Source: Macrostomum lignano (taxonomy: Eukaryota). From it: DNA of 64,000 bases. Shown here one piece after another: positions 815-64,000 of the stretch. The position numbers and the translations under genes are program-made. Location: NCBI GenBank assembly GCA_002269645.1, contig NIVC01000867.1:360324-424323 (forward strand), written 5' to 3'. The first letter of the stretch is position 1. The number at the start of each line of letters is the position of its first letter. A model generated the notes under the pieces. That model saw only the letters and a program-made list of their open reading frames with translations, was not told the DNA's origin and did no database searches.

Positions 815-25051
<24,237 letters not shown>

Positions 25052-40113: not shown

Positions 40114-43100
40114 ATGGAGTATGAAGATTCACAGCAGTTTGCAGAAATTTTCGGCTATAACGGCACCCTGAACAGCAGCGTTGTTGCAGATTTTCTCTCA
40201 AGTCTCAGAATGGACAGCAACTTTGCGCATCAGCTCAAAAGTCAAGGCAGGGTAAGGATTACTATTACTTAAGTACATACCGGATGCATAGCTATAATAA
40301 CTACACTAAATTTCAATGGTACATCGTGTCCTCACCGCAATATTATTACAGTGTCCAAGTCACAACTTTAGCTCGGAAGTCTGGTACGATGGCGGTCGAA
40401 GACAGGCGGATCTGATGAAGGCCATCTGGGAGACGGTGCAAACCCCGGCCTGTTATGCTAGGGAGGGCGGTCTGGCGGCCTCGCTAACTGGCTCAACCTT
40501 ACGAGATACTGATGCCGCAGTGGAAAGCACTGGAGGCAATACCGCCGTTCAAGGTGCGTTCATTTGCTTTTTCGATTTTCTTTTTTGAAATTACTTGATC
40601 ATGGTGGCTAAAACCCCATTTGACGGGAAGCCTCGGGTGGAATATCTTTCAGGACTACAATAACAGTTGAGCATAGCAATTTGTGTCCTTTGCTTTTCGT
40701 TAATAAAATTTTGTTAGCAGCAGAAGGGATTCCCATTACAGGATTCAAAAAGTGCTAACCAAACCCGATGCGACTTAACTTTTGTGATCGAGAACTGTTT
40801 CCTATGCTGCTTTGAAAGATGGATAGATTTAAAAGTCTATATTGATATTACTTCTATCATTTAAGTATCATTTTGCTGAATTCGAAAGAGTATTGACGTA
40901 ACCGCCTTACGAGTCAAGGCAACATGAAGTTCTTGAAAGTCAACTACAGGCTTTAATTAGACCATAAATAAGTTGTGCGCTTTAGCTTTCACAGATACTT
41001 TCACACCTTTCTAACTCCAAACCGAACCTCCTGACAGTGTGGGGCTACGGACTGCTCTGCGTCACCGCCATTAACCTGTGCTCCCTGCTGGGCGTCGCTT
41101 TCATGCCGGTGATGAAACGAAGTTTCTACCGACTGCTGCTGACTTTTATGACGGCGTTGGCTGTTGGCTCGCTGATTGCCACTGCCCTACTGATTTTGCT
41201 GCCCGATGTGAGTAAAATTCGTTGTTAAGTTGGGTCGAATCATCGATTATGGACAAGTAAAGTAGGACGCTAACCCTCGAAAATCGTGAAAATTTCACTG
41301 GTAAGCGCGGGTTAGTTAGTGGTCGCAAAATTAAATAGCGAGATAGAAACTTTCTGGATTTTTAAGCACTAAATCGCCAATTCTGCACCTTTTGAACTTC
41401 CGCATTTACGAGTAGTTTTTCCGAAGTTGATCTGCAAGTTGATCAAGCGATTGTATTTAAGAAATTCTAAGTGTTATACTGAGAAGCAACTCTTCATCAT
41501 GTACTTTTCAGAGCAACTCAAATTGCTACCGTTCACAACAGATAGACCAGTTTCAAAATAACTTTTTATGTGTCCATCGAGCATGACATGACGCACATAT
41601 GAATTTTAATAATAGACCCATAAACATGTATACGAGCGTATCTATGGCCAAAATTCTTGTTATCCGATCAAGCTTGCGATCAAGGTTGCAAATTTTGATT
41701 TCTTTAAAATAGAAGACTTTCAAGCTTATGCCTCTATACAGTCTTGAAATCTTCGGTATCAGTTGTCATGACGAGCTAATCAAAATTTAAGGAGATGCGA
41801 CACCAGGTCAGTCAACGGTTTACAGATGGTACTCGATGTTCGTTGATGGAGCAGTTCCACTGGTCGCAGCTCCTCGGATTGACCTACCGAGCTCTTGTTG
41901 AAGAAAATCCAAAATTTATGTGTCCGAGACCTCGTCGGACTTTGTTTGAAGGCTTTTTACAACTAGGGCATAGAAAAATCTTTCAACAGGTACGAGGTGG
42001 AAGCTGAGACGTGGGTGGTACCTCAACAACACTGGCACAAGGTAAAACAAAAGATCCTGGCGTTTCCAAGGGGATCTTTGACCACATTCAGCAACCACAA
42101 TGAAGTTCGAGAAGCTGCGTTGCAGCGGGCAAGAGACTTTGACCAAGATTGCTTAAAAAGAGAGGTTCAACAACTCGTTGACCATTTGGAAGCTGTGTAA
42201 TCAATGCATTTTTAGATTAAATTTTCAACTAGTTTCTTTCAACAATGTTTTCCGATAGTTCTGAAAACTTTTAAAAATAAATTCTCACGACTTTCTGGAC
42301 AGCCGAAGTAACACAGTTAGTAATCCAGTCGCTTTACTCAGCCCACAGGAATGTAGCTAATTGTGCGCTCTGGTGCTGCTTGCGTGACGATAAGTGCGCT
42401 CTTATGCCAGTGCTCGCCAATTGAACTGCTTCGGAACTAAATAATCTCATAATCTGGAAAAGTCTTCAAAAATAACTGCCATGTCTTCAGAGAGAGAAAG
42501 AAAAAATAAAGAAAGATGAAATCTGAGACCACTTTTTACAGGTGCATGTAGCTACATGTACTAGTGTATCGAAATGTGCTTTGAACTACGAATATATATC
42601 GTTTAACGCTAGAATTGCAAACCAACTGGTTAATTAATCAAAGATTTTTCTCTTCAAAGATTTTTTAGATTTTCGTTGCCTCGCCGTCGCCACACTCGGT
42701 TCGTTTTTGCCTACCCTTCACTAAATTCGTATAGACACGTTGCGAAATGATCAAGTAATCATATTACTATCGACGTATCTATCGTATAACGTAGATTGGT
42801 TTGAGTGTAACATCCAGAGTCAGCGAGAATCGCAAACTCTCAAGGGTCTGTTCTCACCCCCATCAAATAAGTTATTAAGTCGCATGATTGATGTACAAAA
42901 CTGTGAAAGTTTTGAGCCAAAATTGTTCCACCCAGAGACGCAGGCCATCGTATTGAATTTGAAATGGAGACGTCAAGTTACCGTCAAAATGGCGGCGCCT
43001 GCAGCGCTAAAATGAGAACCTTTATGATGTGTGTAATCTATGTGAAATTCACATTAGACTTTCACATTCTGTCTTAGCTTGTAGAACGTTGAATTGTCTG

Positions 43101-46100
43101 TTTTAGAAACGACTGATTTCACATACAGTAAAATAACCCACCTCCAAACCCGAGTCTAGCAACAACTCAATTACTAGTCGTGGTTATCAAAGCACAGTAC
43201 AGAGTAGTGCCTACCTTCAGTTTTGAATGGCCGCTTTTGTAAATTGTAAGTCTGGTATTATTTTACAGCAAGTTCCACTATCAATCTTATCTAGCAAAGT
43301 ATTCGCGTAAAACCGACCGAACACTTTGCCTAATTCGGAGTTTTCAGTTTTACACGCTCGCTTCACTATCCCACTCGATAACAAGCAATTAACTGCAGTT
43401 CAATCGTTTTGCCGTTTACAATGCTAACAATTGAGCAGGAAGTCTACTTCGTCTCGTGACCTCCAGTGTACTCGTAACTTGTTATGCTGAGAACCTAATC
43501 GCTGGAGAATCAAGTTCCCTTAAAATTTAGTCCCATGCGAATCTAGTCTCTTGATAATCTAGTCCTTTGATAATCTAGTGCCTGATAATCTAGATCCATG
43601 AGAACCTAGATCCATGAGAATCTATTCCGATAAGAATCTAGTCTCATGAGAATCTAGTTCTATGAGAAACTAGATCCATGAGAATTTAGTCCTATGAGAA
43701 TCTAGTCCCATGAGAACCTAGTCCCATGAGAATCTAGTCCCATGAGAACCTAGTCCCATGAGAATCTAGTCCCATGAGAATCTAGTCCCATGAGAACCTA
43801 GTCCCATGAGAATCTAGTCCCATGAGAATCTAGTCCCATGAGAACCTAGTCCCATGAGAATCTAGTCCCATGAGAATCTAGTCCCATGAGAATCTAGTCG
43901 CATGAGAACCTAGTCCAAAAGGAACCTATTGCTTTACGAATCTCAGTTTCCTTGAGAATCTATTCCTTTAAAAACCTAGTCCGTGTAAATCTCTCTATTG
44001 AGAAATCATTCTCTTTAGAATCAAGCATATGAGAACCTATTATACCGATAAACTAGTATTTTGATTATTCCTTTGAATAAATGAGTTTGCAAATGAAACA
44101 TACTGGTAGATATTTTCACTCCTGCACTAAAACAGTCGTTCGAGTTGGCTTTCATACACGAGGAGACGAATTCGGCTCACTCCGTCATCAGCCGGTTCGC
44201 GTCAACAAAAGCTGAACGAGAAGGCTGGAGCCAGTTTCTGTCTGCAAGGCCCTGGTACCTCTGGAGATGCTGCTTCGCTTTCGGTGGAATCTACCTGTTC
44301 TATGTGCTGGAGCGCCTGCTCAAAGAGCTACTAAGATTAAGGGTGAGTGAGTCATTTACAATTAAGTTTCTGTAGGCACCTGCTGCCCAGTGCTTGCATT
44401 TATAAGTGATTTTAATCCTGGTGTGCATTTCCGATGTACATCCAATATTCTTGGCTATCTGTTTTTAATGCACGCAGTCTCAACTGGAGGGTCGCTGCTA
44501 AATATATAAATCGATAGCACAGAGCCTACAATAGATTGAGGCTTTATCGGCTACACACAACACATAACTTTCTCTCTCTCGGCTTCGCTCTCTACAGTTT
44601 CCTAGAATCAAAAAGTCGTTAATATTGTTGTCCTAATATCGGCAGTTTTTACATTTTGTACCTAAATTTCAAAGTTCAAAGGTTCTTACTTTTAGCGCTT
44701 GTACGTTCGTAATATTGTTAAGCGGAAAAATTGAACTTTGGCCTATGTATTTATTTTGTTCTTTAGCTTTGCCATTCCTTTTTTAAAGCTTTGTCTTTAT
44801 TTGCCTTGATTAAAAAAAAATTTCTTTAGATTACGGATTAGCAAAAAACGACATTTTTAAGTGAAATATTGTTTTTTAGTTTTTTTACAAAAATTTAAGC
44901 TTCATATTAGGCTTTTCAGCTTCTTTTCAAACCGATGGTAAAAACAAAACTTCATTACTGTTTCTGGCGGCATGATCCATCATCGTCTTCCTAGCTACTA
45001 TTACAGTAGTAACTTCAGGACTTAGACGCCGATGTAAATTTTTTTGTTTCATGCCGTTTTTTCTAATCCTGCACCACTTACTAATGAATAAAGTTCCGTT
45101 CGCATCAAAAAGTATATATCAAGCGACAGTATCAGTATATGCAAAGTTCAATTTAAATTCGCGCCGAAATTCGTAAAGTGTGCAGTAGTAGACACTCTTT
45201 CACTCTTAACTCTAGTATAATTAAAAATAATTTAATAGTACTTTGCGGTGAGTAAGATAATAACCCTTTTTGGCACGAATTCAAATTAAAAGTATACGCG
45301 GTCACGGTCTGAGCTCTAGTGATAAGTCTTAAGTACGAATTTATGCTTGTGAATTCATAAATTTATAAATTTGCGACAAAATCTAGCCGATTGTGAACGT
45401 ATGATTAACAGTCCGGCTGCATGAGCTGAACTTAATTGATTTGATAATTCTATCAATTTTTAAGTCGAACGGCAGTGGCCTGCAGCATGTTCATACGCAC
45501 GGAGTTGAGACTGAGCAGGAGCAGGAGCTCAATAAAAGCATCAACAACAATATCGAGATGCGGACTCAAGCTGAGCCAGAAATCGAAGCCGGCCTGTCTG
45601 GAAGAAGAACAGTCGACGACGCAGTTCCAACTGGACGAGCTGCTAAACTGCGCGCACGACTTGCCAGCGTGCAGCCCGTGGCCTGGATGATTCTGCTTGG
45701 CGACTCGCTGCACAACTTCATCGACGGGATTAGCCTCGGCGCGGCGTTCGCTCGATCCCCGCTGACTGGCGTGAGCATAGGACTGGCCGTCCTGTGCGAG
45801 GAGCTGCCCCACGAACTAGGCGACTTTGCCATCCTGTTGTCGGCTGGCATGTCCATCCCGATGGCTGCCGTATCCAATCTGCTGTCCGCCTGCGTCTGCT
45901 ATGTTGGTTTCGCAATTGGCGTGCTTCTGGGAGAGGTCGGATTCAGCGTTTGGATCTTCGCGGCCGGCGGGGGAATGTTTCTCTACATCAGTCTGGTTGA
46001 CATGGTGAGAATAATTTCAGCTCTTATGCAGTGAAGTCAGGGGGTCGCAGCTCCTCCTCCGACAATAGAATCTAGTTCTTTGAGATTCTAGTCGCATGAG

Positions 46101-46796
46101 AAACTAGTTAGTCCCTTGAGAATCTAGTCCTTTTAGAATCTATTTATATGAGAATATAGTCTTTTGAGAATCTAGTCCCTTGAAAATCTAGTTCCTTTTA
46201 GAGTCTACTTATATGAGAATCTAGTCTTTTGAGAATCTAGTCCCTTGAAAATCTAGTTACTTTGAGAATCTAGTCCCTTGAGAATCTAGTTCCTTTGAGA
46301 ATCGACTCCCATGAGAATCTAGTCCCTTAAGAATCTAGTCCTTTGAGAATCTATTTATATGAGGATCTAGTCCCTGGAGAATTTAGTTCCTTTGAGAATC
46401 TAGTCCTTTTAGAGTCTATTTATATGAGAATCTAGTCCCTGGAGAATCTAGTTCCTTTGAGAATATAGTCCTTGGAGAATATAGTCCTTTGAGAATCCAA
46501 TCCTTTGAGAATCCAATCCTTTGAAAATCTAATCCCACGCGAATCTACTCTGTATAGAATCTAGTCCCATAAGAACCCGAATTCGTTGGCAAAATAGCCG
46601 CAGGTGTAATACCGCCAAACCGTCCAATCCTCATGCTTACTTCCAGATGCCCGAAGTGAACTCAGCGATGGACACGGCCAAATCCTTTGGTCTGAACAGA
46701 TGGAAAATTTTCTTACTGCAGAACATTGGCCTGCTATTGGGCTACGGGCTCATTCTGCTGATTGCTGTGTTTGGCGGTGAAATCAATATTGAATGA
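40114..46796 (+). CDS. ZIP (SLC39) LIV-1 subfamily metal transporter, ZIP8/ZIP14-like
   Basis: Exons 40114-40251, 40352-40553, 41038-41207, 44136-44342, 45465-46004, 46647-46796 (1407 nt, phases consistent). Motifs: VWGYGLLCVTAINLCSLLG, ALAVGSL, GGIYLFYVLE, GDSLHNFIDG, LCEELPHELGDFAILL, GGMFLYISLVDMMPE, LQNIGLLLG. The start codon is uncertain: no signal peptide is visible, and an AG acceptor at 40080 allows an additional upstream exon. Confidence 0.88.
40745..40795 (-). pseudogene. 5S rRNA-derived fragment (possible SINE3 head or 5S relic)
   Basis: Minus strand CTCGATCACAAAAGTTAAGTCGCATCGGGTTTGGTTAGCACTT resembles the 5S internal control region (GATCTCGGAAGCTAAGCAGGGTCGGGCCTGGTTAGTACTT). Confidence 0.4.
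41710..42210 (+). mobile_element. Internally deleted, degenerate mariner (Tc1/mariner) transposase relic in ZIP intron 3
   Basis: Interrupted translation EDFQAY...ISCHDELIKI*GDATPGQSTVYRWYSMFVDG..APR resembles the mariner N-terminal HTH. FSNHNEVREAALQ...LKREVQQLVDHLEAV resembles the mariner C-terminus. The DD34D core is missing and I did not find TIRs. Confidence 0.65.
43535..43990. repeat. 16-bp minisatellite (GAGAATCTAGTCCCAT)n, ZIP intron 3
   Basis: Direct reading. Confidence 0.92.
46050..46575. repeat. 16-17-bp minisatellite (GAGAATCTAGTCCYTT)n, ZIP intron 5
   Basis: Direct reading; same motif family as 43535-43990. Confidence 0.9.
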
Positions 46797-47121: not shown

Positions 47122-47127
47122 AATAAA
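47122..47127 (+). terminator. Candidate polyadenylation signal of the ZIP gene
   Basis: AATAAA about 325 nt after the ZIP stop codon in an AT-rich 3' region. Confidence 0.4.
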
Positions 47128-47984
47128 AGTATTTAATAATAATAATTGCATATAATCACAGATACTATATAGATACTACTAGTGATAGTTAACTGCTTCG
47201 GCCTAAAATTTGCGCCCGTACTTTTGTATTTGCTTTACTGTGTGCTTTTTAAGAAAGTGCCGTACGAGCGTACTGTAAAAACACTTGCTAATTTACACAT
47301 TGAGAGTCTTTAGACAAGATTATTCTTCAATTGTATCTCGCAGACCATTCCCCTAACGGTTGCATGCTTATCGCTGCTCGCTAAAATTATGCATGAGTCA
47401 AATTTATTTACTGAAGCCGTCAATTACCAAATTCAAAGACAAGTAAAAAACCGCCAGAGTCTCACTACTTCTCAGCTTAAAAAAAGTTGGTCATAAAAAC
47501 TTTCAACGGCTTTCTAATAGTAAAAAACTGGATTTTAATTCGAACTTAGTTGTAGCGGCTTTATTTATCAGCTCCCAGTGGTGCACTGGCGCCCGGTCCA
47601 ACAGATGGCGCTGGGCGCCAGAACATCGAAATTTCGACGCCGAGTTTTTCACAATTTTCACTGTACTACTTACTATCGAGAGGGCGCAGAGTGGGGGGCA
47701 CTGTGTAAAAAAACACGCTTTTCATAAGTCTAGGGTCTATTATTAGTAATTTTATGTTCCTGGATCTCCATTTTTATTTGTTGAACAATTTTCAAGTCTA
47801 TAACCTCATTTCAAGAAATAATACGCTCGTATGTTATCAAAATCATTCTCGGCAAAAAAGTAGCTTTTTCAGAATCTTTCAGCCAAGAATTTTTCAATAA
47901 ATGCTACTGAAAGTAGGTAACTACGAAATGAAACTTTGATGATTTTTTAAATTTCTGCTTTATGAGTGTCGTCATCAATTCTTA

Positions 47985-50900
47985 AATGGGAAATCCAGTA
48001 AGAACAATCAGAAATTGCCAAGCTGTATTAGTAGACTCAAATATGAAATTCTACAGATCATTAGAGCGTGTCAGTCCCTGTCTTCCCCAGAAAGAATCGT
48101 GTCTCTAGCTTAATCTGCTTTCCAGATATCCACTCAAAAACGGCGATTCCAGAAAATTGCAATGCATTCAAATGGTTAAATTCGCGAAAATCAATCAGCA
48201 ATTGCCAAGCTGTATTAGAAGACTCAGATATGAGATTCTACAGATCATTAGAGCGTGTCAGTCCCTGTCTTCCCTAGAAAGAATCGTGTCTCTAGCTTAA
48301 TCTGCTTTCCAGATATTCGAAGGCGGAGATTCCGGAAAATTTCTATGTATTTAAATAAGGGAAATCCAGGAAAATCAATCACAAATTGCCAAGCTGTATT
48401 AGAAGACTCAGATATGAGATTCTACAGATCATTAGAGCGTGTCAGTCCCTATCTTCCCTAGAAAGAATCGTGTCTCTAGCTTAATCTGCCTTCCAGATAT
48501 TCATTCAAAAATGGCGATTCCAGAAAATTGCAATGCATTCAAATGGTGAAATTCGCGAAAATCAATCAGCAATTGCCAAGCTGTATTAGAAGACTCAGAT
48601 ATGAGATTCTACAGATCATTAGAGCGTGTCAGTCCCTATCTTCCCTAGAAAGAATCATGTCTCTAGCTTAATCTGCTTTCCAGATATTCGAAGGCGGAGA
48701 TTCCGGAAAATTTCTGTATTTAAATAAGGGAAATCCAGGAAAATCAATCACAAATTGCCAAGCTGTATTAGAAGACTCAGATATGAGATTCTACAGATCA
48801 TTAGAGCGTGTCAGTCCCTGTCTTCCCCAGAAAGAATCGTGTCTCTAGCTTAATCTGCCTTCCAGATATTCATTCAAAAACGGCGATTCCAGAAAATTGC
48901 AATGCATTCAAATGGTGAAATTCGCGAAAATCAATCAGCAATTGCCAAGCTGTATTAGAAGACTCAGATATGAGATTCTACAGATCATTAGAGCGTGTCA
49001 GTCCCTGTCTTCCCTAGAAAGAATCGTGTCTCTAGCTTAATCTGCTTTCCAGATATTCGAAGGCGGAGATTCCGGAAAATTTCTATGTATTTAAATAAGG
49101 GAAATCCAGGAAAATCAATCACAAATTGCCAAGCTGTATTAGAAGACTCAAATATGAGATTCTACAGATCATTAGAGCGTGTCAGTCCCTGTCTTCCCCA
49201 GAAAGAATCGTGTCTCTAGCTTAATCTGCTTTCCAGATATTCATTCAAAAACGGCGATTCCAGAAAATTGCAATGCATTCAAATGGTGAAATTCGCGAAA
49301 ATCAATCAGCAATTGCTAAGCTGTATTAGAAGACTCAGATATGAGATTCTACAGATCATTAGAGCGTGTCAGTCCCTGTCTTCCCTAGAAAGAATCGTGT
49401 CTCTAGCTTAATCTGCTTTCCAGATATTCGAAGGCGGAGATTCCGGAAAATTTCTATGTATTTAAATAAGGGAAATCCAGGAAAATCAATCACAAATTGC
49501 CAAGCTGTATTAGAAGACTCAGATATGAGATTCTACAGATCATTAGAGCGTGTCAGTCCCTGTCTTCCCTAGAAAGAATCGTGTCTCTAGCTTAATCTGC
49601 TTTCCAGATATTCGAAGGCGGAGATTCCGGAAAATTTCTATCTATTTAAATAAGGGAAATCCAGGAAAATCAATCACAAATTGCCAAGCTGTATTAGAAG
49701 ACTCAGATATGAGATTCTACAGATCATTAGAGCGTGTCAGTCCCTGTCTTCCCCAGAAAGAATCGTGTCTCTAGCTTAATCTGCCTTCCAGATATTCATT
49801 CAAAAATGGCGATTCCAGAAAATTGCAATGCATTCAAATAGTGAAATTCGCGAAAATCAATCAGCAATTGCCAAGCTGTATTAGAAGACTCAGATATGAG
49901 ATTCTACAGATCATTAGAGCGTGTCAGTCCCTATCTTCCCTAGAAAGAATCATGTCTCTAGCTTAATCTGCTTTCCAGATATTCGAAGGCGGAGATTCCG
50001 GAAAATTTCTATGTATTTAAATAAGGGAAATCCAGGAAAATCAATCACAAATTGCCAAGCTGTATTAGAAGACTCAGATATGAGATTCTACAGATCATTA
50101 GAGCGTGTCAGTCCCTGTCTTCCCCAGAAAGAATCGTGTCTCTAGCTTAATCTGCCTTCCAGATATTCATTCAAAAACGGCGATTCCAGAAAATTGCAAT
50201 GCATTCAAATGGTGAAATTCGCGAAAATCAATCAGCAATTGCCAAGCTGTATTAGAAGACTCAGATATGAGATTCTACAGATCATTAGAGCGTGTCAGTC
50301 CCTATCTTCCCTAGAAAGAATCATGTCTCTAGCTTAATCTGCTTTCCAGATATTCGAAGGCGGAGATTCCGGAAAATTTCTATGTATTTAAATAAGGGAA
50401 ATCCAGGAAAATCAATCAGCAATTGCCAAGCTGTATTAGAAGACTCAAATATGAGATTCTACAGATCATTAGAGCGTGTCAGTCCCTATCTTCCCTAGAA
50501 AGAATCATGTCTCTAGCTTAATCTGCTTTCCAGATATTCGAAGGCGGAGATTCCGGAAAATTTCTATGTATTTAAATAAGGGAAATCCAGGAAAATCAAT
50601 CACAAATTGCCAAGCTGTATTAGAAGACTCAGATATGAGATTCTACAGATCATTAGAGCGTGTCAGTCCCTGTCTTCCCCAGAAAGAATCGTGTCTCTAG
50701 CTTAATCTACTTTCCAGATATTCACTCAAAAACGGCGATTCCAGAAAATTGCAATGCATTCAAATGGTGAAATTCGCGAAAATCAATCAGCAATTGCCAA
50801 GCTGTATTAGAAGACTCAAATATGAGATTCTACAGATCATTAGAGCGTGTCAGTCCCTATCTTCCCTAGAAAGAATCGTGTCTCTAGCTTAATCTGCTTT

Positions 50901-51022
50901 CTAGATATTCCAAGGCGGCGATTCCGGAAAATTTTCTATGCATTAAAATACGGGAAATCCAGGATAATCAATCAGCAATTGCCAAGCTGTTTTACTAGAG
51001 TCAAATATGAAATTCTACAGAT
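47985..51022. repeat. 185-bp satellite array 1 (~16 monomers, A/B variants)
   Basis: Core GAGCGTGTCAGTCC recurs every 184-187 bp. Variant order read as ABABABABBABABBA plus a divergent terminal monomer. Confidence 0.95.
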
Positions 51023-53724
51023 GACACCGACTGATACGCTCTAGTGATCTGTGGAGTTTCATGTTTGGGTCTACTAATACAGCTTCCTTGACCAGGAGAA
51101 AGCAGTTTCCTGGACCCAGGGGACCAGGCACAGGAAAAGCAATGCTGAGTTTGCTAAAGACAGGGGGCCAAATGCAGATGCTTCACAGATCGCAGACCCA
51201 CATCTGGCCGCTCTGGAGACAACCGAACCTCTTTGTTCTTATTCTTCGAGTCACAGACCAAATCTCGAGGCTTGCCGGGACGAAAAATCAACACAGAAGG
51301 TTCTTCCCCCCGATATGTATGACTGAGGCCGCAAAAAGTATAGCATTGGTCCAACAGAGCCGTATCTGTTGGACATATGCTCTGTCCAAGAAAGAGACCC
51401 GCTCTGTATCGATCGAGCGGTGAGATAAACCATTTTTATGGTCCTAGAGGCTTTTTTACTTCACTTTACCTGTCTATATTGTATATGTTTGGAAATGGGC
51501 ATGAGGATACCCACGGCATTCGGAACCCTTTATCTCTTTTGCTTCTTCCATTTAGAAGCAAAAATCTAATTTATTAGCCTCTCGAGCTTCTCCTTCCGAC
51601 ATCTTTTTTGCCACGCCACCAGGTTCCTACTGTCTCGTCCGATACTCCCCCGATAAGAAAAAAGTTTTTTTTCCAGCCTCTTTGTTTGATCCAGGCACGA
51701 TCCATGGACTCCTAGATTCTACTGGACTGAAAGCGAAATTGCCGCCTGTACAAGATGAGGGCATTCTTTCTTCCCCCAGCCAGTCCGTTCCTCAGCCACC
51801 AAAAGAATCAATCATGGAAAATAAGTTTTGAGCGCAAGACAGAATCTCATTTATTGATGACATGCCAATGCCAATAACTACTATTTCAGAATTCGGCACT
51901 GTTTATTTATGCAGGATTGGCAATTTAAAATAATCAGCAAACAGTTGGTGAAAAAATGCAGATAAATAACGTTTTAGAGTCACTAAATTATAGTGCAATC
52001 GAGGAGAAAAGGCAACAGTTATCCTTATTCAAACCACTTGTCAATGTACAACCCCACAGTCTGTGTCACTGTCTTTTCATGCACTTGCTCACTTTGGCTT
52101 CAGGCTGGAACGCGATATGTACGCGTTTGCTTGTTTGGGATGCCGTGAGGGAAAGAGTGTTGCGGAGAAGGGCCCCCACTCCTCTCTTCCTCAGAAAGGA
52201 ACTTTGCCCCATGTTGTACAGAAAAAAATAATGTATTTTCCGTTTCCTGTCCGGGTGCTTATATATAGTCGTCCATGCATGATCAGGGTTCTCAGACCAT
52301 GAATAGAATGGGTTTCCACGATTTTTGTTAGCTATGCAGCTAAACAGATATAAATCTTGGTTTTGATACATTAGGAAGGCCTTCAACAAAGCAGAACCAA
52401 GAAAGCAAGGCAGAACAAAAAACGGACTTATAGCTAGCGTTCTCGAGGTTTCAGTCTCTTTGTGTATCGATGATGCCAGTTCACAGTCGCATAAGCTAGT
52501 AGTTTTTTCGGCAAATGCATTCGGGGCGGAGTCGAGAAATCAAAGCAGCTGATTGATGATTCCAAAACAGCTGTGGGAAACGATATACGTTTCAATTAAT
52601 ACCAATATACAATCTAGAAATCTTGACATAAACTTTAGGCTATATACGAGTCGAGCTAATAACAAATCCGTTTGAATCTAATCACTGTCGCCCGTTAGAG
52701 GCACAACGCAGAAACGAATTTCTGCTTCAGTTGCTTCGGTTCGGTATCCCGATTTTTTAAGGCCAAATCCATGCAAATCGTGGCACACCACTCTTAAGGG
52801 GAAGAGGGGAGAAGCAGAGCTAGGAAATCTTTGTTTGGTTTGCTTTGTTCTTTCGTATAGAGCTTTGGTATATATTGGCTTAATTATATACATGTATACC
52901 GTATCACAAGTTACGAAAAATAAATGGTATCAGATATTTCAAACAGACTCAGAATAACAAGCAGTTGCATTCGCCGTTTCTTAACATCTGTACAAAAACT
53001 GCGAAAGCATAAGCGCCCTTCAAAAATCTCGAAGTCGAAAGCTGATTGAGATAGAGACATTCTTTTTGTGGGTGACACCGACTGGCACGCTCTAATAATC
53101 GGTTAGAATCTCATATCTGAGTCTCCATTAAAGTTATCTATGTCCTAACATGTATATACTAAAAACTATAATCTGACAATAATAAAGCAACACAAGTATT
53201 AGGTTCCTCATTTTCAAATATAGGTACATGTATATTGATTGCAAGGAATTGAAAGCAAGACTCAGTTTATTTTACCAGCTAATTCTTACAAAAATGCTCA
53301 CACAGGATGAATACCCAGTGGTGCACTGGCGCCCGGTCCAACAGATGGCGCTGGGCGCCAGAACATCGAAATTTCGACGCCGAGTTTTTCACAATTTTCA
53401 CTGTACTACTTACTATCGAGAGGGCGCAGAGTGGGGGGCACTGTGTAAAAAAACACGCTTTTCATAAGTCTAGGGTCTATTATTAGTAATTTTATGTTCC
53501 TGGATCTCCATTTTTATTTGTTGAACAATTTTCAAGTCTATAACCTCATTTCAAGAAATAATACGCTCGTATGTTATCAAAATCATTCTCGGCAAAAAAG
53601 TAGCTTTTTCAGAATCTTTCAGCCAAGAATTTTTCAATAAATGCTACTGAAAGTAGGTAACTACGAAATGAAACTTTGATGATTTTTTAAATTTCTGCTT
53701 TATGAGTGTCGTCATCAATTCTTA

Positions 53725-56700
53725 AATGGGAAATCCAGTAAGAACAATCAGAAATTGCCAAGCTGTATTAGTAGACTCAAATATGAAATTCTACAGATCA
53801 TTAGAGCGTGTCAGTCCCTGTCTTCCCCAGAAAGAATCGTGTCTCTAGCTTAATCTGCTTTCCAGATATCCACTCAAAAACGGCGATTCCAGAAAATTGC
53901 AATGCATTCAAATGGTTAAATTCGCGAAAATCAATCAGCAATTGCCAAGCTGTATTAGAAGACTCAGATATGAGATTCTACAGATCATTAGAGCGTGTCA
54001 GTCCCTGTCTTCCCTAGAAAGAATCGTGTCTCTAGCTTAATCTGCTTTCCAGATATTCGAAGGCGGAGATTCCGGAAAATTTCTGTATTTAAATAAGGGA
54101 AATCCAGGAAAATCAATCACAAATTGCCAAGCTGTATTAGAAGACTTAGATATGAGATTCTACAGATCATTAGAGCGTGTCAGTCCCTATCTTCCCTAGA
54201 AAGAATCATGTCTCTAGCTTAATCTGCTTTCCAGATATTCGAAGGCGGAGATTCCGGAAAATTTCTATGTATTTAAATAAGGGAAATCCAGGAAAATCAA
54301 TCACAAATTGCCAAGCTGTATTAGAAGACTCAGATATGAGATTCTACAGATCATTAGAGCGTGTCAGTCCCTGTCTTCCCCAGAAAGAATCGTGTCTCTA
54401 GCTTAATCTGCTTTCCAGATATTCATTCAAAAATGGCGATTCCAGAAAATTGCAATGCATTCAAATGGTGAAATTCGCGAAAATCAATCACAAATTGCCA
54501 AGCTGTATTAGAAGACTCAGATATGAGATTCTACAGATCATTAGAGCGTGTCAGTCCCTATCTTCCCCAGAAAGAATCGTGTCTCTAGCTTAATCTGCTT
54601 TCCAGATATTCGAAGGCGGAGATTCCGGAAAATTTCTATGTATTTAAATAAGGGAAATCCAGGAAAATCAATCACAAATTGCCAAGCTGTATTAGAAGAC
54701 TCAGATATGAGATTCTACAGATCATTAGAGCGTGTCAGTCCCTGTCTTCCCCAGAAAGAATCGTGTCTCTAGCTTAATCTGCTTTCCAGATATTCACTCA
54801 AAAACGGCGATTCCAGAAAATTGCAATGCATTCAAATGGTGAAATTCGCGAAAATCAATCAGCAATTGCCAAGCTGTATTAGAAGACTCAGATATGAGAT
54901 TCTACAGATCATTAGAGCGTGTCAGTCCCTGTCTTCCCCAGAAAGAATCGTGTCTCTAGCTTAATCTGCTTTCCAGATATTCAAAACGGCGATTCCAGAA
55001 AATTGCAATGCATTCAAATGGTTAAATCCGAAAATCAATCAGCAATTGCCAAGCTGTATTAGAAGACTCAGATATGAGATTCTACAGATCATTAGAGCGT
55101 GTCAGTCCCTGTCTTCCCTAGAAAGAATCGTGTCTCTAGCTTAATCTGCTTTCCAGATATTCGAAGGCGGAGATTCCGGAAAATTTCTATGTATTTAAAT
55201 AAGGGAAATCCAGGAAAATCAATCAGCAAATTGCCAAGCTGTATTAGAAGACTCAGATATGAGATTCTACAGATCATTAGAGCGTGTCAGTCCCTATCTT
55301 CCCTAGAAAGAATCGTGTCTCTAGCTTAATCTGCTTCCAGATATTCATTCAAAAATGGCGATTCCAGAAAATTGCAATGCATTCAAATGGTGAAATTCGC
55401 GAAAATCAATCAGCAATTGCCAAGCTGTATTAGAAGACTCAGATATGAGATTCTACAGATCATTAGAGCGTGTCAGTCCCTATCTTCCCTAGAAAGAATC
55501 GTGTCTCTAGCTTAATCTGCTTTCCAGATATTCGAAGGCGGAGATTCCGGAAAATTTCTGTATTTAAATAAGGGAAATCCAGGAAAATCAATCAGCAATT
55601 GCCAAGCTGTATTAGAAGACTCAGATATGAGATTCTACAGATCATTAGAGCGTGTCAGTCCCTGTCTTCCCCAGAAAGAATCGTGTCTCTAGCTTAATCT
55701 GCTTTCCAGATATTCATTCAAAAGGCGATTCCAGAAAATTGCAATGCATTCAAATGGTGAAATTCGCGAAAATCAATCAGCAATTGCCAAGCTGTATTAG
55801 AAGACTCAGATATGAGATTCTACAGATCATTAGAGCGTGTCAGTCCCTGTCTTCCCTAGAAAGAATCGTGTCTCTAGCTTAATCTGCTTTCCAGATATTC
55901 GAAGGCGGAGATTCCGGAAAATTTCTATGTATTTAAATAAGGGAAATCCAGGAAAATCAATCACAAATTGCCAAGCTGTATTAGAAGACTCAGATATGAG
56001 ATTCTACAGATCATTAGAGCGTGTCAGTCCCTGTCTTCCCCAGAAAGAATCGTGTCTCTAGCTTAATCTGCTTTCCAGATATTCATTCAAAAACGGCGAT
56101 TCCAGAAAATTGCAATGCATTCAAATGGTGAAATTCGCGAAAATCAATCAGCAATTGCCAAGCTGTATTAGAAGACTCAGATATGAGATTCTACAGATCA
56201 TTAGAGCGTGTCAGTCCCTGTCTTCCCTAGAAAGAATCGTGTCTCTAGCTTAATCTGCTTTCCAGATATTCGAAGGCGGAGATTCCGGAAAATTTCTATG
56301 TATTTAAATAAGGGAAATCCAGGAAAATCAATCACAATTGCCAAGCTGTATTAGAAGACTCAGATATGAGATTCTACAGATCATTAGAGCGTGTCAGTCC
56401 CTGTCTTTCCAGAAAGAATCGTGTCTCTAGCTTAATCTGCTTTCCAGATATTCATTCAAAAATGGCGATTCCAGAAAATTGCAATGCATTCAAATGGTGA
56501 AATTCGCGAAAATCAATCAGCAAATTGCCAAGCTGTATTAGAAGACTCAGATATGAGATTCTACAGATCATTAGAGCGTGTCAGTCCCTGTCTTCCCCAG
56601 AAAGAATCGTGTCTCTAGCTTAATCTGCTTTCCAGATATTCGAAGGCGGAGATTCCGGAAAATTTCTAATGTATTTAAATAAGGGAAATCCAGGAAAATC

Positions 56701-59700
56701 AATCAGCAATTGCCAAGCTGTATTAGAAGACTCAGATATGAGATTCTACAGATCATTAGAGCGTGTCAGTCCCTGTCTTCCCCAGAAAGAATCGTGTCTC
56801 TAGCTTAATCTGCTTTCCAGATATTCAAAAAGGCGATTCCAGAAAATTGCAATGCATTCAAATGGTGAAATTCGCGAAAATCAATCAGCAATTGCCAAGC
56901 TGTATTAGAAGACTCAGATATGAGATTCTACAGATCATTAGAGCGTGTCAGTCCCTGTCTTCCCCAGAAAGAATCGTGTCTCTAGCTTAATCTGCTTTCC
57001 AGATATCATTCAAAAGGCGATTCCAGAAAATTGCAATGCATTCAAATGGTGAAATTCGCGAAAATCAATCAGCAATTGCCAAGCTGTATTAGAAGACTCA
57101 GATATGAGATTCTACAGATCATTAGAGCGTGTCAGTCCCTGTCTTCCCTAGAAAGAATCGTGTCTCTAGCTTAATCTGCTTTCCAGATATTCGAAGGCGG
57201 AGATTCCGGAAAATTTCTATGTATTTAAATGGGAAATCCAGGAAAATCAATCAGCAATTGCCAAGCTGTATTAGAAGACTCAGATATGAGATTCTACAGA
57301 TCATTAGAGCGTGTCAGTCCCTATCTTCCCTAGAAAGAATCGTGTCTCTAGCTTAATCTGCTTTCCAGATATTCATTCAAGGCGATTCCAGAAAATTGCA
57401 ATGCATTCAAATGGGAAATCGCGAAAATCAATCAGCAATTGCCAAGCTGTATTAGAAGACTCAGATATGAGATTCTACAGATCATTAGAGCGTGTCAGTC
57501 CCTATCTTCCCTAGAAAGAATCGTGTCTCTAGCTTAATCTGCTTTCCAGATATTCGAAGGCGATTCCGAAAATTGCTGTATTTAAATGGGAAATCCAGAA
57601 AATCAATCAGCAATTGCCAAGCTGTATTAGAAGACTCAGATATGAGATTCTACAGATCATTAGAGCGTGTCAGTCCCTGTCTTCCCCAGAAAGAATCGTG
57701 TCTCTAGCTTAATCTGCTTTCCAGATATTCATTCAAGGCGATTCCAGAAAATTGCAATGCATTTAAATGGTGAAATTCGCGAAAATCAATCAGCAATTGC
57801 CAAGTTGTATTAGAAGACTCAGATATGAGATTCTACAGATCATTAGAGCGTGTCAGTCCCTGTCTTCCCAGAAAGAATCGTGTCTCTAGCTTAATCTGCT
57901 TTCCAGATATTCGAAGGCGGAGATTCCGGAAAATTTCTATGTATTTAAATAAGGGAAATCCAGGAAAATCAATCACAATTGCCAAGCTGTATTAGAAGAC
58001 TCAGATATGAGATTCTACAGATCATTAGAGCGTGTCAGTCCCTGTCTTCCCAGAAAGAATCGTGTCTCTAGCTTAATCTGCTTTCCAGATATTCATTCAA
58101 GGCGATTCCGAAAATTGCATGCATTCAAATGGGAAATCCGAAAATCAATCAGCAATTGCCAAGCTGTATTAGAAGACTCAGATATGAGATTCTACAGATC
58201 ATTAGAGCGTGTCAGTCCCTGTCTTCCCCAGAAAGAATCGTGTCTCTAGCTTAATCTGCTTTCCAGATATTCGAAGGCGATTCCGGAAAATTTCTATGTA
58301 TTCAAATGGGAAATCAGGAAAATCAATCACAATTGCCAAGCTGTATTAGAAGACTCAGATATGAGATTCTACAGATCATTAGAGCGTGTCAGTCCCTGTC
58401 TTCCCTAGAAAGAATCGTGTCTCTAGCTTAATCTGCTTTCCAGATATTCGAAGGCGGAGATTCCGGAAAATTTCTATGTATTTAAATAAGGGAAATCCAG
58501 GAAAATCAATCACAAATTGCCAAGCTGTATTAGAAGACTCAGATATGAGATTCTACAGATCATTAGAGCGTGTCAGTCCCTGTCTTCCCCAGAAAGAATC
58601 GTGTCTCTAGCTTAATCTGCTTTCCAGATATTCATTCAAAAATGGCGATTCCAGAAAATTGCAATGCATTTAAATGGAAATCGCGAAAATCAATCAGCAA
58701 TTGCCAAGCTGTATTAGAAGACTCAGATATGAGATTCTACAGATCATTAGAGCGTGTCAGTCCCTATCTTCCCAGAAAGAATCGTGTCTCTAGCTTAATC
58801 TGCTTTCCAGATATTCGAAGGCGGAGATTCCGGAAAATTTCTATGTATTTAAATAAGGGAAATCCAGGAAAATCAATCAGCAAATTGCCAAGCTGTATTA
58901 GAAGACTCAGATATGAGATTCTACAGATCATTAGAGCGTGTCAGTCCCTGTCTTCCCCAGAAAGAATCGTGTCTCTAGCTTAATCTGCCTTCCAGATATT
59001 CATTCAAAAACGGCGATTCCAGAAAATTGCAATGCATTCAAATGGTGAAATTCGCGAAAATCAATCAGCAATTGCCAAGCTGTATTAGAAGACTCAGATA
59101 TGAGATTCTACAGATCATTAGAGCGTGTCAGTCCCTGTCTTCCCTAGAAAGAATCATATCTCTAGCTTAATCTGCTTTCCAGATATTCGAAGGCGGAGAT
59201 TCCGGAAAATTTCTATGTATTTAAATAAGGGAAATCCAGGAAAATCAATCAGCAATTGCCAAGCTGTATTAGAAGACTCAATATGAGATTCTACAGATCA
59301 TTAGAGCGTGTCAGTCCCTGTCTTCCCTAGAAAGAATCATGTCTCTAGCTTAATCTGCTTTCCAGATATTCGAAGGCGGAGATTCCGGAAAATTTCTATG
59401 TATTTAAATAAGGGAAATCCAGGAAAATCAATCACAAATTGCCAAGCTGTATTAGAAGACTCAGATATGAGATTCTACAGATCATTAGAGCGTGTCAGTC
59501 CCTGTCTTCCCCAGAAAGAATCGTGTCTCTAGCTTAATCTGCTTTCCAGATATTCATCAAAAACGGCGATTCCAGAAAATTGCAATGCATTCAAATGGTG
59601 AAATTCGCGAAAATCAATCAGCAATTGCCAAGCTGTATTAGAAGACTCAATATGAGATTCTACAGATCATTAGAGCGTGTCAGTCCCTATCTTCCCTAGA

Positions 59701-59852
59701 AAGAATCGTGTCTCTAGCTTAATCTGCTTTCTAGATATTCCAAGGCGGCGATTCCGGAAAATTTTCTATGCATTAAAATACGGGAAATCCAGGATAATCA
59801 ATCAGCAATTGCCAAGCTGTTTTACTAGAGTCAAATATGAAATTCTACAGAT
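53725..59852. repeat. 185-bp satellite array 2 (~33 monomers)
   Basis: Same monomers and same divergent first and last monomers as array 1; longer interior. Confidence 0.95.
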
Positions 59853-62544
59853 GACACCGACTGATACGCTCTAGTGATCTGTAGAATTTCATGTTTAAGT
59901 CTACTAATACAGCTTCCTTGACCAGGAGAAAGCAGTTTCCTGGACCCAGGGGACCAGGCACAGGAAAAGCAATGCTGAGTTTGCTAAAGACAGGGGGCCA
60001 AATGCAGATGCTTCACAGATCGCAGACCCACATCTGGCCGCTCTGGAGACAACCGAACCTCTTTGTTCTTATTCTTCGAGTCACAGACCAAATCTCGAGG
60101 CTTGCGGGACGAAAAATCAACACAGAAGGTTCTTCCCCCCGATATGTATGACTGAGCCGCAAAAAGTATAGCATTGGTCCAACAGAGCCGTATCTGTTGG
60201 ACATATGCTCTGTCCAAGAAAGAGACCCGCTCTGTATCGATCGAGCGGTGAGATAAACCATTTTTATGGTCCTAGAGGCTTTTTTACTTCACTTTACCTG
60301 TCTATATTGTATATGTTTGGAAATGGGCATGAGGATACCCACGGCATTCGGAACCCTTTATCTCTTTTGCTTCTTCCATTTAGAAGCAAAAATCTAATTT
60401 ATTAGCCTCTCGAGCTTCTCCTTCCGACATCTTTTTTGCCACGCCACCAGGTTCCTACTGTCTCGTCCGATACTCCCCCGATAAGAAAAAAGTTTTTTTT
60501 CCAGCCTCTTTGTTTGATCCAGGCACGATCCATGGACTCCTAGATTCTACTGGACTGAAAGCGAAATTGCCGCCTGTACAAGATGAGGGCATTCTTTCTT
60601 CCCCCAGCCAGTCCGTTCCTCAGCCACCAAAAAGAATCAATCATGGAAAATAAGTTTTGAGCGCAAGACAGAATCTCATTTATTGATGACATGCCAATGC
60701 CAATAACTACTATTTCAGAATTCGGCACTGTTTATTTATGCAGGATTGGCAATTTAAAATAATCAGCAAACAGTTGGTGAAAAATGCAGATAAATAACGT
60801 TTTAGAGTCACTAAATTATAGTGCAATCGAGGAGAAAAGGCAACAGTTATCCTTATTCAAAACCACTTGTCAATGTACAACCCCACAGTCTGTGTCACTG
60901 TCTTTTCATGCACTTGCTCACTTTGGCTTCAGGCTGGAACGCGATATGTACGCGTTTGCTGTTTGGGATGCCGTGAGGGAAAGAGTGTTGCGGAGAAGGG
61001 CCCCACTCCTCTCTTCCTCAGAAAGGAACTTTGCCCCATGTTGTACAGAAAAAAATAATGTATTTTCCGTTTCCTGTCCGGGTGCTTATATATAGTCGTC
61101 CATGCATGATCAGGGTTCTCAGACCATGAATAGAATGGGTTTCCACGATTTTTGTTAGCTATGCAGCTAAACAGATATAAATCTTGGTTTTGATACATTA
61201 GGAAGGCCTTCAACAAAGCAGAACCAAGAAAGCAAGGCAGAACAAAAAACGGACTTATAGCTAGCGTTCTCGAGGTTTCAGTCTCTTTGTGTATCGATGA
61301 TGCAGTTCACAGTCGCATAAGTAGTAGTTTTTTCGGCAAATGCATTCGGGGCGGAGTCGAGAAATCAAAGCAGCTGATTGATGATTCCAAAACAGCTGTG
61401 GGAAACGATATACGTTTCAATTAATACCAATATACAATCTAGAAATCTTGACATAAACTTTAGGCTATATACGAGTCGAGCTAATAACAAATCCGTTTGA
61501 ATCTAATCACTGTCGCCCGTTAGAGGCACAACGCAGAAACGAATTTCTGCTTCAGTTGCTTCGGTTCGTATCCCGATTTTTTAAGGCCAAATCCATGCAA
61601 ATCGTGGCACACCACTCTTAAGGGAAGAGGGGAGAAGCAGAGCTAGGAAATCTTTGTTTGGTTTGCTTTGTTCTTTCGTATAGAGCTTTGGTATATATTG
61701 GCTTAATTATATACATGTATACCGTATCACAAGTTACGAAAAATAAATGGTATCAGATATTTCAAACAGACTCAGAATAACAAGCAGTTGCATTCGCCGT
61801 TTCTTAACATCTGTACAAAAACTGCGAAAGCATAAGCGCCCTTCAAAAATCTCGAAGTCGAAAGCTGATTGAGATAGAGACATTCTTTTTGTGGGTGACA
61901 CCGACTGGCACGCTCTAATAATCGTTAGAATCTCATATCTGAGTCTCCATTAAAGTTATCTATGTCCTAACATGTATATACTAAAAACTATAATCTGACA
62001 ATAATAAAGCAACACAAGTATTAGGTTCCTCATTTTCAAATATAGGTACATGTATATTGATTGCAAGAATTGAAAGCAAGACTCAGTTTATTTTACCAGC
62101 TAATTCTTACAAAAATGCTCACACAGGATGAATACCCAGTGGTGCACTGGCGCCCGCGCAACAGATGGCGCTGGGCGCCAGAACATCGAAATTTCGACGC
62201 CGAGTTTTTCACAATTTTCACTGTACTACTTACTATCGAGAGGGCGCAGAGTGGGGGGCACTGTGTAAAAAACACGCTTTTCATAAGTCTAGGGTCTATT
62301 ATTAGTAATTTTATGTTCCTGGATCTCCATTTTTATTTGTTGAACAATTTTCAAGTCTATAACCTCATTTCAAGAAATAATACGCTCGTATGTTATCAAA
62401 ATCATTCTCGGCAAAAAAGTAGCTTTTTCAGAATCTTTCAGCCAAGAATTTTTCAATAAATGCTACTGAAAGTAGGTAACTACGAAATGAAACTTTGATG
62501 ATTTTTTAAATTTCTGCTTATGAGTGTCGTCATCAATTCTTAAA

Positions 62545-64000
62545 TGGGAAATCCAGTAAGAACAATCAGAAATTGCCAAAGCTGTATTAGTAGACTCAAA
62601 TATGAAATTCTACAGATCATTAGAGCGTGTCAGTCCCTGTCTTCCCCAGAAAGAATCGTGTCTCTAGCTTAATCTGCTTTCCAGAATATCCACTCAAAAA
62701 CGGCGATTCCAGAAAATTGCAATGCATTCAAATGGTTAAATTCGCGAAAATCAATCAGCAATTGCCAAGCTGTATTAGAAGACTCAGATATGAGATTCTA
62801 CAGATCATTAGAGCGTGTCAGTCCCTGTCTTCCCTAGAAAGAATCGTGTCTCTAGGCTTAATCTGCTTTCCAGATATTCGAAGGCGGAGATTCCGGAAAA
62901 TTTCTGTATTTAAATAAGGGAAATCAGGAAAATCAATCACAAATTGCCAAGCTGTATTAGAAGACTTAGATATGAGATTCTACAGATCATTAGAGCGTGT
63001 CAGTCCCTATCTTCCCTAGAAAGAATCGTGTCTCTAGCTTAATCTGCCTTCCAGATATTCATTCAAAATGGCGATTCCAGAAAATTGCAATGCATTCAAA
63101 TGGTGAAATTCGCGAAAATCAATCAGCAATTGCCAAGCTGTATTAGAAGACTCAGATATGAGATTCTACAGATCATTAGAGCGTGTCAGTCCCTGTCTTC
63201 CCTAGAAAGAATCGTGTCTCTAGCTTAATCTGCTTTCCAGATATTCGAAGGCGGAGATCCGGAAAATTTCTGTATTTAAATAAGGGAAATCCAGGAAAAT
63301 CAATCACAAATTGCCAAGCTGTATTAGAAGACTTAGATATGAGATTCTACAGATCATTAGAGCGTGTCAGTCCCTATCTTCCCTAGAAAGAATCATGTCT
63401 CTAGCTTAATCTGCTTTCCAGATATTCGAAGGCGGAGATTCCGGAAAATTTCTATGTATTTAAATAAGGAAATCCAGGAAAATCAATCACAAATTGCCAA
63501 GCTGTATTAGAAGACTCAGATATGAGATTCTACAGATCATTAGAGCGTGTCAGTCCCTGTCTTCCCCAGAAAGAATCGTGTCTCTAGCTTTAATCTGCTT
63601 TCCAGATATTCATTCAAAAATGGCGATTCCAGAAAATTGCAATGCATTCAAATGGTGAAATTCGCGAAAATCAATCACAAATTGCCAAGCTGTATTAGAA
63701 ACTCAGATATGAGATTCTACAGATCATTAGAGCGTGTCAGTCCCTATCTTCCCCAGAAAGAATCGTGTCTCTAGCTTAATCTGCTTTCCAGATATTCGAA
63801 GGCGGAGATTCCGGAAAATTTCTATGTATTTAAATAAGGGAAATCCAGGAAAATCAATCACAAATTGCCAAGCTGTATTAGAAGACTCAGATATGAGATT
63901 CTACAGATCATTAGAGCGTGTCAGTCCCTGTCTTCCCCAGAAAGAATCGTGTCTCTAGCATTAATCTGCTTTCCAGATATTCACTCAAAACGGCGATTCC
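62545..64000. repeat. 185-bp satellite array 3 (truncated by window end)
   Basis: Same monomer family. Confidence 0.95.

Follow-up and report, generated by a model that had tools for sequence, protein, structure and literature searches.

A window of 64,000 nucleotides from the flatworm Macrostomum lignano (contig NIVC01000867.1 of assembly GCA_002269645.1, positions 360,324 to 424,323 of the forward strand, numbered here from its first letter) carries at 47574-64000 a two-level tandem repeat, in which a unit containing a satellite array is itself repeated head-to-tail; two units are visible in full and a third over its initial 1.87 kb. The block is located just downstream of a zinc-transporter gene and consists of at least 2.2 head-to-tail copies of a non-coding unit of 5.7-8.8 kb. 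An earlier note, made from the letters of this DNA alone, had proposed a two-tier composite repeat whose inner satellite varies in copy number while its edges are fixed, and this proposal is supported in agreement by Tandem Repeats Finder (TRF), by BLAST comparison of the window with itself and by edit distances between monomers. The two-tier composite tandem repeat is genuine and well beyond chance. As its origin we favour the local tandem amplification of a composite non-coding unit, a reading that we put at about an even chance, and the block itself appears to be devoid of a detectable function of its own.

Architecture of the composite unit

The first unit extends over 47574-53313 (5,740 bp) and the second over 53314-62134 (8,821 bp), whereas the third starts at 62135 and reaches the window edge at 64000 after its head and about eight monomers, all three being read on the forward strand. 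Of the three consecutive units counted in the earlier note, only two are complete. Within a unit, a GC-rich hairpin cluster is followed by AT-rich DNA, the satellite array, a fold-back stub, a unique spacer with a second hairpin cluster, an inverted half monomer and a tail. In the self-comparison, the non-satellite DNA between the arrays recurs in the same order and orientation, with the head at 47574-47987 being identical over its 414 bp to 53314-53727 and 98.8% identical to 62135-62546, and with the spacer region at 51023-53722 showing 99.2% identity to 59853-62540. The left boundary is defined exactly at 47574 by aligning the three head starts: the upstream flank of unit 1, ...TTTATCAGCT (ending in ATCAGCT), is unrelated to the sequence in front of the two other heads, ...CACAGGATGAATA (ending in ...GGATGAATA), whereas from CCCAGTGGTGCACTGG (CCCAGTGGTG...) onward all three agree. 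The two spacer-to-head junctions, at 53313/53314 and 62134/62135, are identical. A kilobase-sized unit that is repeated head-to-tail with identical junctions is among the features that define a macrosatellite or composite repeat. Base 64000 is reached before the array ends on the right, and the visible ends are confined to the left edge and the unit junctions.

The satellite arrays account for 53-69% of a unit and all run on the forward strand in one orientation. Array 1 (47988-51022; TRF period 184, 16.4 copies, score 4626) contains 16 full monomers and a stub of 71 bp, array 2 (53728-59852, or 53722-59852 as delimited by TRF; 33.4 copies, score 9465) contains 33 full monomers and the same 71-bp stub, and array 3 (62547-64000, from 62546 in TRF) contains at least eight monomers before the window ends. 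The periods found by TRF, 184 and 371, reflect a dimer in which 187-bp monomers of type aA alternate with 184-bp monomers of type bB, an aB appearing now and then, and a core of 33 nucleotides is invariant in all 55 full monomers. The 185-bp satellite of the earlier description is thus correct in its arrays of 16 and 33 monomers, whereas its repeat is really the dimer of 187 + 184 bp. The interiors of the arrays are homogenised, with 0-5 differences within a type, yet they differ between units in the number and order of their monomers. The edges behave in the opposite manner. Compared to interior monomers of their own type, at least eight changes are found in each of the first monomer, the last full one and the stub of 71 bp, and between units the edit distance amounts to 0 for the first monomer, 2 for the second, 1 for the last full monomer and 0 for the stub, which bears out the claim that array edges are the same while interiors are different. 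The type pattern of the last 12 monomers is equal in arrays 1 and 2, and array 3 repeats the order of array 2 except for an additional dimer that follows its second monomer. With their head-to-tail monomers of constant length, their alternating types, their homogenised interior and their diverged edges, the arrays show the defining features of a dimeric higher-order satellite, and the pattern is as expected for an array that evolves by unequal exchange with frozen edges. Since the distinctive edge monomers were copied along with the unit, the array and its edges are older than the unit amplification, and it was after this amplification that the inner arrays changed their length by gain or loss of monomers in the aA-bB dimer register.

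A separate observation concerns the stretch at 57231-58305 (monomers 2.20-2.25), where monomers are shortened to 175-183 bp and where the variable block resembles an A/B hybrid (CATTC----AAGGCGATTCC). These are either real recombinants or they mark a stretch of low consensus quality.

The palindrome-rich head that had been noticed before is readily recognised, with nine of the 16 GC-rich stems of the entire window residing in the three heads. At the exact start of unit 1, a 72-bp GC-rich hairpin cluster on the forward strand, termed PAL-1 (47574-47645), has a GC content of 64% compared to 41% in the window, and its folding exceeds that of 199 out of 200 shuffled sequences (z = -2.8). Four hairpins or palindromes are found within its first 63 bp: a palindromic 15-mer CCAGTGgtgCACTGG (47575-47589), which begins with nucleotide 2 of the unit and thus 1 nt from its start, a 9-bp stem CTGGCGCCC/GGGCGCCAG (47586-47621), whose loop region carries the motif GGTCCAACAGA, a palindrome or hairpin GGCGCtggGCGCC (47607-47619) and a perfect palindrome TCGAAATTTCGA (47626-47637), all on the forward strand. 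The rest of head 1 (47646-47987, forward strand) comprises about 340 bp with 32% GC, decreasing to 29% from 47721 on, in line with the AT-rich stretch previously described in front of the array, and it contains no coding signal. Head 2 consists of the equivalent PAL-1 copy and AT-rich part, and head 3 departs from head 1 by 2 substitutions and four 1-bp indels. In head 3, GCGC at 62155-62158 replaces the GGTCC of heads 1 and 2 inside PAL-1, a change that abolishes the GGTCCAACAGA motif, which PAL-1 has in common with the hairpin cluster of the spacer. An interpretation of head and spacer as degenerate satellite was rejected, as their local alignments to the dimer do not rise above those of shuffled sequences.

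At its right end, the array breaks off at position 71 of the monomer, from where the sequence runs on as inverted positions 98 down to 33. The resulting fold-back stub, which abuts the array end and is in reverse orientation, is located at 51020-51085 in unit 1 and at 59850-59915 in unit 2, the latter with four clustered G/A changes relative to the former. Array end and stub pair over about 45 bp to form a hairpin that spans approximately 50985-51085 (z = -4.1 in unit 1 and -4.9 in unit 2), which substantiates the fold-back that had been placed after the array. The unique spacer begins with 256 bp of 51% GC (51086-51341), proceeds through the second hairpin cluster PAL-2 (51342-51445), which is composed of three consecutive hairpins (z = -5.3), and ends in a main part of about 1.6 kb (51446-53036) with no Pfam match and with open reading frames (ORFs) that are without relatives, all of this on the forward strand. 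A unique spacer of about 2 kb had been recognised earlier, with PAL-2 left unmentioned. The first hairpin of PAL-2 reads AGCATtgGTCCAACAGA...TCTGTTGGACatATGCT. Common to both clusters is the 11-mer GGTCCAACAGA, which finds six matches in the window, all within units, against one expected. The clusters also share an inverted pair with 18 of 20 nucleotides matching, at nucleotides 23-40 of the unit and at 51354-51374, a similarity that was reached by none of 300 shuffles (with a 50-nt query). In PAL-2, which precedes the unit end by 1.9 kb, the inverted motif is followed by a hairpin with a 6-bp GC stem and by ACCATTTTTATGGT with its T run TTTTT.

The spacer is succeeded by a second inverted piece of satellite in reverse orientation, at 53037-53124 in unit 1 and 61860-61946 in unit 2, which corresponds to monomer positions 46-135. 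With a length of 88-91 bp in both units and an identity of 80-81%, which we take as a sign of old age, it comprises only about half of the solo inverted monomer that had been proposed at this place. Since the monomer positions of the two inverted pieces overlap (33-98 and 46-135), neither of them is the split half of one monomer. The tail of unit 1 (53125-53313, forward strand, 29% GC) measures 189 bp, as anticipated from the earlier value of about 190 bp, and ends at the junction in ...CACACAGGATGAATA. In unit 2, the forward-strand region following the stub (59916-62134) includes the PAL-2 copy at about 60170-60273, the inverted half monomer and the tail at 61947-62134. Neither a hairpin in the last 150 nt (z = +1.8) nor a CTRR motif was found at the 3' end of the unit, ...CACACAGGATGAATA (...GGATGAATA). 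A simple insertion of spacer and head into an older array was rejected, as the break at monomer position 71 is followed by a new start at position 1 in the next array, and as the two overlapping inverted pieces do not represent a split monomer.

Age and origin of the units

The similarity between units is high. Spacers 1 and 2 are distinguished by 4 substitutions and 13 one-base indels, of which 12 are located in mononucleotide runs and many may be consensus errors, and outside a 16-bp patch at 51053-51068 there are zero substitutions in about 2.2 kb of spacer. This near-identity means that the units were amplified very recently or are still being homogenised. A measure for comparison is provided by contig NIVC01003926.1 (Mlig_3_7), with which the window is collinear over 21400-45767 but from which it differs by 1.3-2.7% substitutions and by the lengths of minisatellites. 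In the neighbouring genes this divergence corresponds to 88 substitutions in 6.8 kb (1.3%) and 49 in 1.8 kb (2.7%), and it indicates that the window represents another haplotype, homeologue or strain rather than the same sequence. In light of this difference in the flanks, the units are much younger, or much more strongly homogenised, than the divergence of the two versions of the locus.

The four spacer substitutions all involve a G in unit 1 (51053, 51056, 51067 and 51068) and an A in unit 2 (59883, 59886, 59897 and 59898). The patch resides in the right arm of the fold-back, where the A form is nearer to the monomer consensus and where the G's of unit 1 pair as G-T in the hairpin. It could reflect a local process of mutation or conversion in the hairpin.

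In the scenario that we favour, an older satellite array together with its flanks would first have been duplicated in place, as a segment of about 5.7 kb, by a non-homologous tandem duplication. The left breakpoint, located right at the foot of the GC-rich hairpins, would be compatible with stalled replication and a switch of template at palindromes. Unequal exchange between sister chromatids, together with gene conversion among units, may then have produced further copies and kept the units nearly identical, and the long inner arrays would offer the best substrate for this exchange. Several points weigh against this scenario. The window closes before the array does, so that the flank of the last unit is unseen, and the searches for head, spacer and monomer covered only a few M. 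lignano loci. The breakpoint, at 1-2 nt from a 15-nt palindrome, would equally fit a transposon or a replication-initiator site, as would the two motif-sharing hairpin clusters that bracket the array (p < ~0.01 by shuffling). Finally, the near-identity of the units is equally well explained by a single rolling-circle burst.

The features that would reveal a mobile element were inspected at the visible ends, and coding capacity and further copies of the unit were searched for. A six-frame Pfam search of spacer and head gave no match, the satellite ORF had no match in protein space and the spacer ORF none among 1.84 billion representatives. No Rfam family was detected over 44-64 kb at E values up to 0.1, so that the unit is not a repeat of spliced-leader (SL) RNA, 5S, tRNA or snRNA genes. 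Outside the block, head, spacer and monomer have no further copy in the other 47.5 kb of the window, and head, dimer, spacer and two motifs are absent from about 70 kb of other M. lignano DNA, comprising a receptor gene described below and two loci of its paralogues. A 20-mer of the head and an invariant 22-mer of the satellite gave 0 matches in metagenome contigs, the latter also 0 in viral contigs, and in the literature searched no paper prints the head or satellite sequences. As samples of a 760-Mb genome, these are far too small to test dispersal. The proposal of the earlier note that the unit is a non-autonomous mobile cassette of the CACTA/CMC, foldback or Helitron/Helentron type, amplified by rolling circle, is thus left without support: the expected signatures fail at the visible ends, the unit is non-coding and no second copy was found. 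The sharp left edge does not speak for mobility either, as any tandem duplication generates one at its junction.

The main rival of the favoured scenario is that the unit is, or contains, a Helentron/HINE-type element, non-autonomous and replicating by rolling circle, which carries a satellite array in its centre. The units would in this case form a concatemer with many 5' ends and one 3' end past the window, or the element proper would extend from 47574 to about 51445, from PAL-1 to PAL-2, with the remaining 1.9 kb added by read-through of a weak terminator. We regard such an origin as possible, with a probability clearly short of even. HINE elements contain subterminal inverted repeats (subTIRs) of 12-15 bp, which are separated from the 5' end by 2-4 nt and from the 3' end by 38-60 nt and which in HINE-Mo are palindromic (PMC4067079), and the palindromic 15-mer starting at nucleotide 2 of the unit resembles them in its location. 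The left flank of about 400 bp followed by tandem repeats, and a monomer size close to that of the Cg_HINE repeats of oysters (PMC7492417), point in the same direction, as does the fixed orientation of the central repeats relative to the flanks, which is a property of Helentrons and HINEs. In PAL-2, the succession of inverted motif, hairpin and ACCATTTTTATGGT reproduces the order of subTIR, palindrome and T run at the 3' end of HINEs, and the units are nearly identical, as they would be after one burst. However, the 15-mer at nucleotides 2-16 has no second copy and no inverted partner near any candidate 3' end. The inverted pair that does exist, at nucleotides 23-40 and 51354-51374, is a different one, whose shared motif starts 22 nt rather than 2-4 nt from the 5' end, and the PAL-2 hairpins with the TTTTT that follows are not located at the unit end.

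The visible termini also differ from those of canonical Helitrons. These are recognised by a 5' TC, an insertion between A and T and a 3' CTRR that has, about 11 bp upstream, a hairpin of 16-20 nt (PMC4067079). In contrast, the unit starts with CCCAGTGG, and thus with CC rather than T or TC, next to a flank ...AGCT that is neither T-rich at the boundary nor ends in TT, and next to ...GAATA at the junction. At the unit junctions there is neither CTRR nor hairpin, the true 3' end of the array being located past the window. This absence is still compatible with a rolling-circle mechanism, as truncated Helitrons are documented in tandem arrays that contain many 5' ends but only one 3' end (Xiong et al. 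2016, as summarised in PMC12628747). Besides the lack of further copies in the window, in the 70 kb of M. lignano DNA and in the metagenome and viral contigs, this origin is disfavoured by the repeat table of the M. lignano genome paper, in the accessible part of which Helentrons are not listed. A more specific version, which we consider rather unlikely, would turn the unit into a flatworm carrier of Helentron-like or unclassified rolling-circle type, where the hairpin cluster of the head would act as initiation site and PAL-2 as leaky terminator, and where the locus would be a concatemer, newly integrated or locally re-replicated, incubating the satellite beside a gene.

An assembly artefact, in which the true locus holds fewer units and alleles or homeologues differing in array length have been joined up, appears improbable. 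Most differences between units are one-base indels in mononucleotide runs, as is typical for the consensus of noisy long reads, the genome of M. lignano is known to resist assembly and to be duplicated in part, blocks of at least 95% identity making up 180 Mb of it (PMC5730564), and contig NIVC01003926.1, judged by its length, probably ends at a position equivalent to about 51.4 kb of the window, inside or just after array 1. However, the identical spacer-to-head junction is found twice beside different arrays, which a locus with a single unit cannot give, and the linked real differences carried by the units, with 16 compared to 33 monomers, the four G/A changes and the variant of head 3, argue for distinct copies.

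A derivative of a cut-and-paste DNA transposon of the CMC/CACTA, hAT, Tc1-like or foldback kind, with its right inverted repeat (of the ...CACCACTGGG type) past the window, is less probable still. Following its first two bases, the head reads CAGTGGTG, which is a start of the CAGTG type. Such starts occur in Tc1-like and hAT-like inverted repeats. The inverted monomer pieces accompanying the forward ones are likewise found in the TCAST elements of Tribolium (PMC3411249). Against this, head-to-tail copies of an element with terminal inverted repeats would each carry both ends, whereas no unit or junction contains an inverted terminus and the window nowhere holds the initial 13-30 nt in inverted orientation; CMC/CACTA elements have terminal inverted repeats starting with CACTA or CACTG and a target duplication of 2-3 bp, while the start CCCAGTGG is not CACTA; neither TA, TTAA nor any other duplicated target is found at the left flank or the junctions; and since the arrays run in one orientation only, with inverted pieces of 66 nt (the stub) and 88 nt in place of long inverted arms built from tandem subrepeats, the unit is not a foldback.

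Neighbouring genes and genomic setting

The left neighbour of the block is a gene for a ZIP14-like zinc transporter on the forward strand (40114-46796), for which a model of six exons was rebuilt (40114-40251, 40352-40553, 41038-41207, 44136-44342, 45465-46004 and 46647-46796, with the stop codon at 46794-46796). The encoded protein of 468 residues equals in length that of the gene with a Zip domain annotated at the corresponding place on NIVC01003926.1 (assembly GCA_002269645.1), and no signal peptide is present at the start of the model. When the largest exon was used in a protein search, only matches of 60-67% were returned, the annotated M. lignano protein not being among them. The sole forward-strand AATAAA hexamer between the ZIP stop and 47574 is located at 47122-47127, 447 bp before the unit, which corroborates the distance of about 450 bp from the poly(A) signal given in the earlier note. 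In two different introns of the gene (43505-43916 and 46067-46575), we found the same minisatellite of 16 bp (GAGAATCTAGTCCCAT / AGAATCTAGTCCTTTG).

Further upstream, on the reverse strand, the first exon of a serotonin-type G-protein-coupled receptor (35083-36153) is 100% identical over 329 aa to BOX15_Mlig006460g1, which adjoins the annotated Zip-domain gene on NIVC01003926.1. Its paralogues in M. lignano are found on other contigs with identities of 70% and 59%.

In the first 33,000 bases of the window, minisatellites follow one another with hardly a break. They form over 20 different arrays whose periods range from 12 to 40 bp, among them 30 bp x 138 (20312-24447), 20 bp x 83 (15219-16870) and 22 bp x 32 (1-692), and many of them are strongly strand-skewed in G/C and A/T. 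This richness fits the share of 13% tandem repeats reported for the M. lignano genome, whose assembly was described as difficult (PMC5730564).

Significance and relation to known systems

Composite tandem repeats and satellite cassettes carried by transposons are both already well known, and in the literature searched we have found no paper describing the satellite DNA of M. lignano, a model for regeneration and stem-cell biology. The locus offers a clean and dated snapshot of an array and its flanks becoming the unit of a longer repeat, where the edges are frozen while the interior is changing. Should mobility of the unit be demonstrated, flatworms would join the bivalves and insects in which satellite cassettes carried by transposons are known, and the locus would provide a tractable case with both tiers intact. 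Blocks of this kind are likely break points in assemblies, and copy numbers determined there need care.

The unit shares with the HINE, DINE-1, Cg_HINE and Pearl elements a left flank, an array of 140-190-bp repeats in one orientation and a hairpin-rich right flank (PMC4067079, PMC7492417), and as in HINE-type elements a palindromic motif is located beside the 5' end of non-coding DNA that resides close to genes. In contrast to these elements, it has neither T-run termini nor a TT target, and its terminal palindrome is without a 3' partner. The array is also far longer than in Cg_HINEs, which contain on average up to 5 and at most 29.3 monomers, and each unit holds about 1.9 kb of extra DNA. 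Tandem arrays of truncated Helitrons that arose by rolling-circle amplification (Xiong, Dooner and Du 2016, as summarised in PMC12628747) are similar in their head-to-tail arrangement, in the same 5' start of their copies and in the lack of a recognisable 3' end at the junctions, whereas the 5' TC, the A/T target and the 3' CTRR with hairpin are not encountered at the ends visible here. The TCAST elements of Tribolium castaneum likewise combine a forward monomer with an inverted segment, separated by unique DNA, near genes in euchromatin (PMC3411249). They are, however, dispersed elements of about 1.1 kb with inverted repeats of 269 bp and a target duplication of 3 bp, whereas the inverted pieces found here are short, old and non-terminal, and the unit is in tandem.

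In composite satellites and macrosatellites, satellite and unrelated DNA have together become a unit of longer period, whose copies are homogenised while the number of inner repeats varies, and in these respects the block in M. lignano is alike. The bovine satellites 1.711a and 1.711b are composite two-level satellites of this kind, with kilobase-sized tandem units that hold an older satellite of short period together with non-satellite DNA. Compared to such systems, the inner array of the present unit is long (3-6 kb) and shows a two-fold difference between neighbouring units, and the repeat, with about 2.2 units seen, lies only 450 bp away from a gene and not in heterochromatin.

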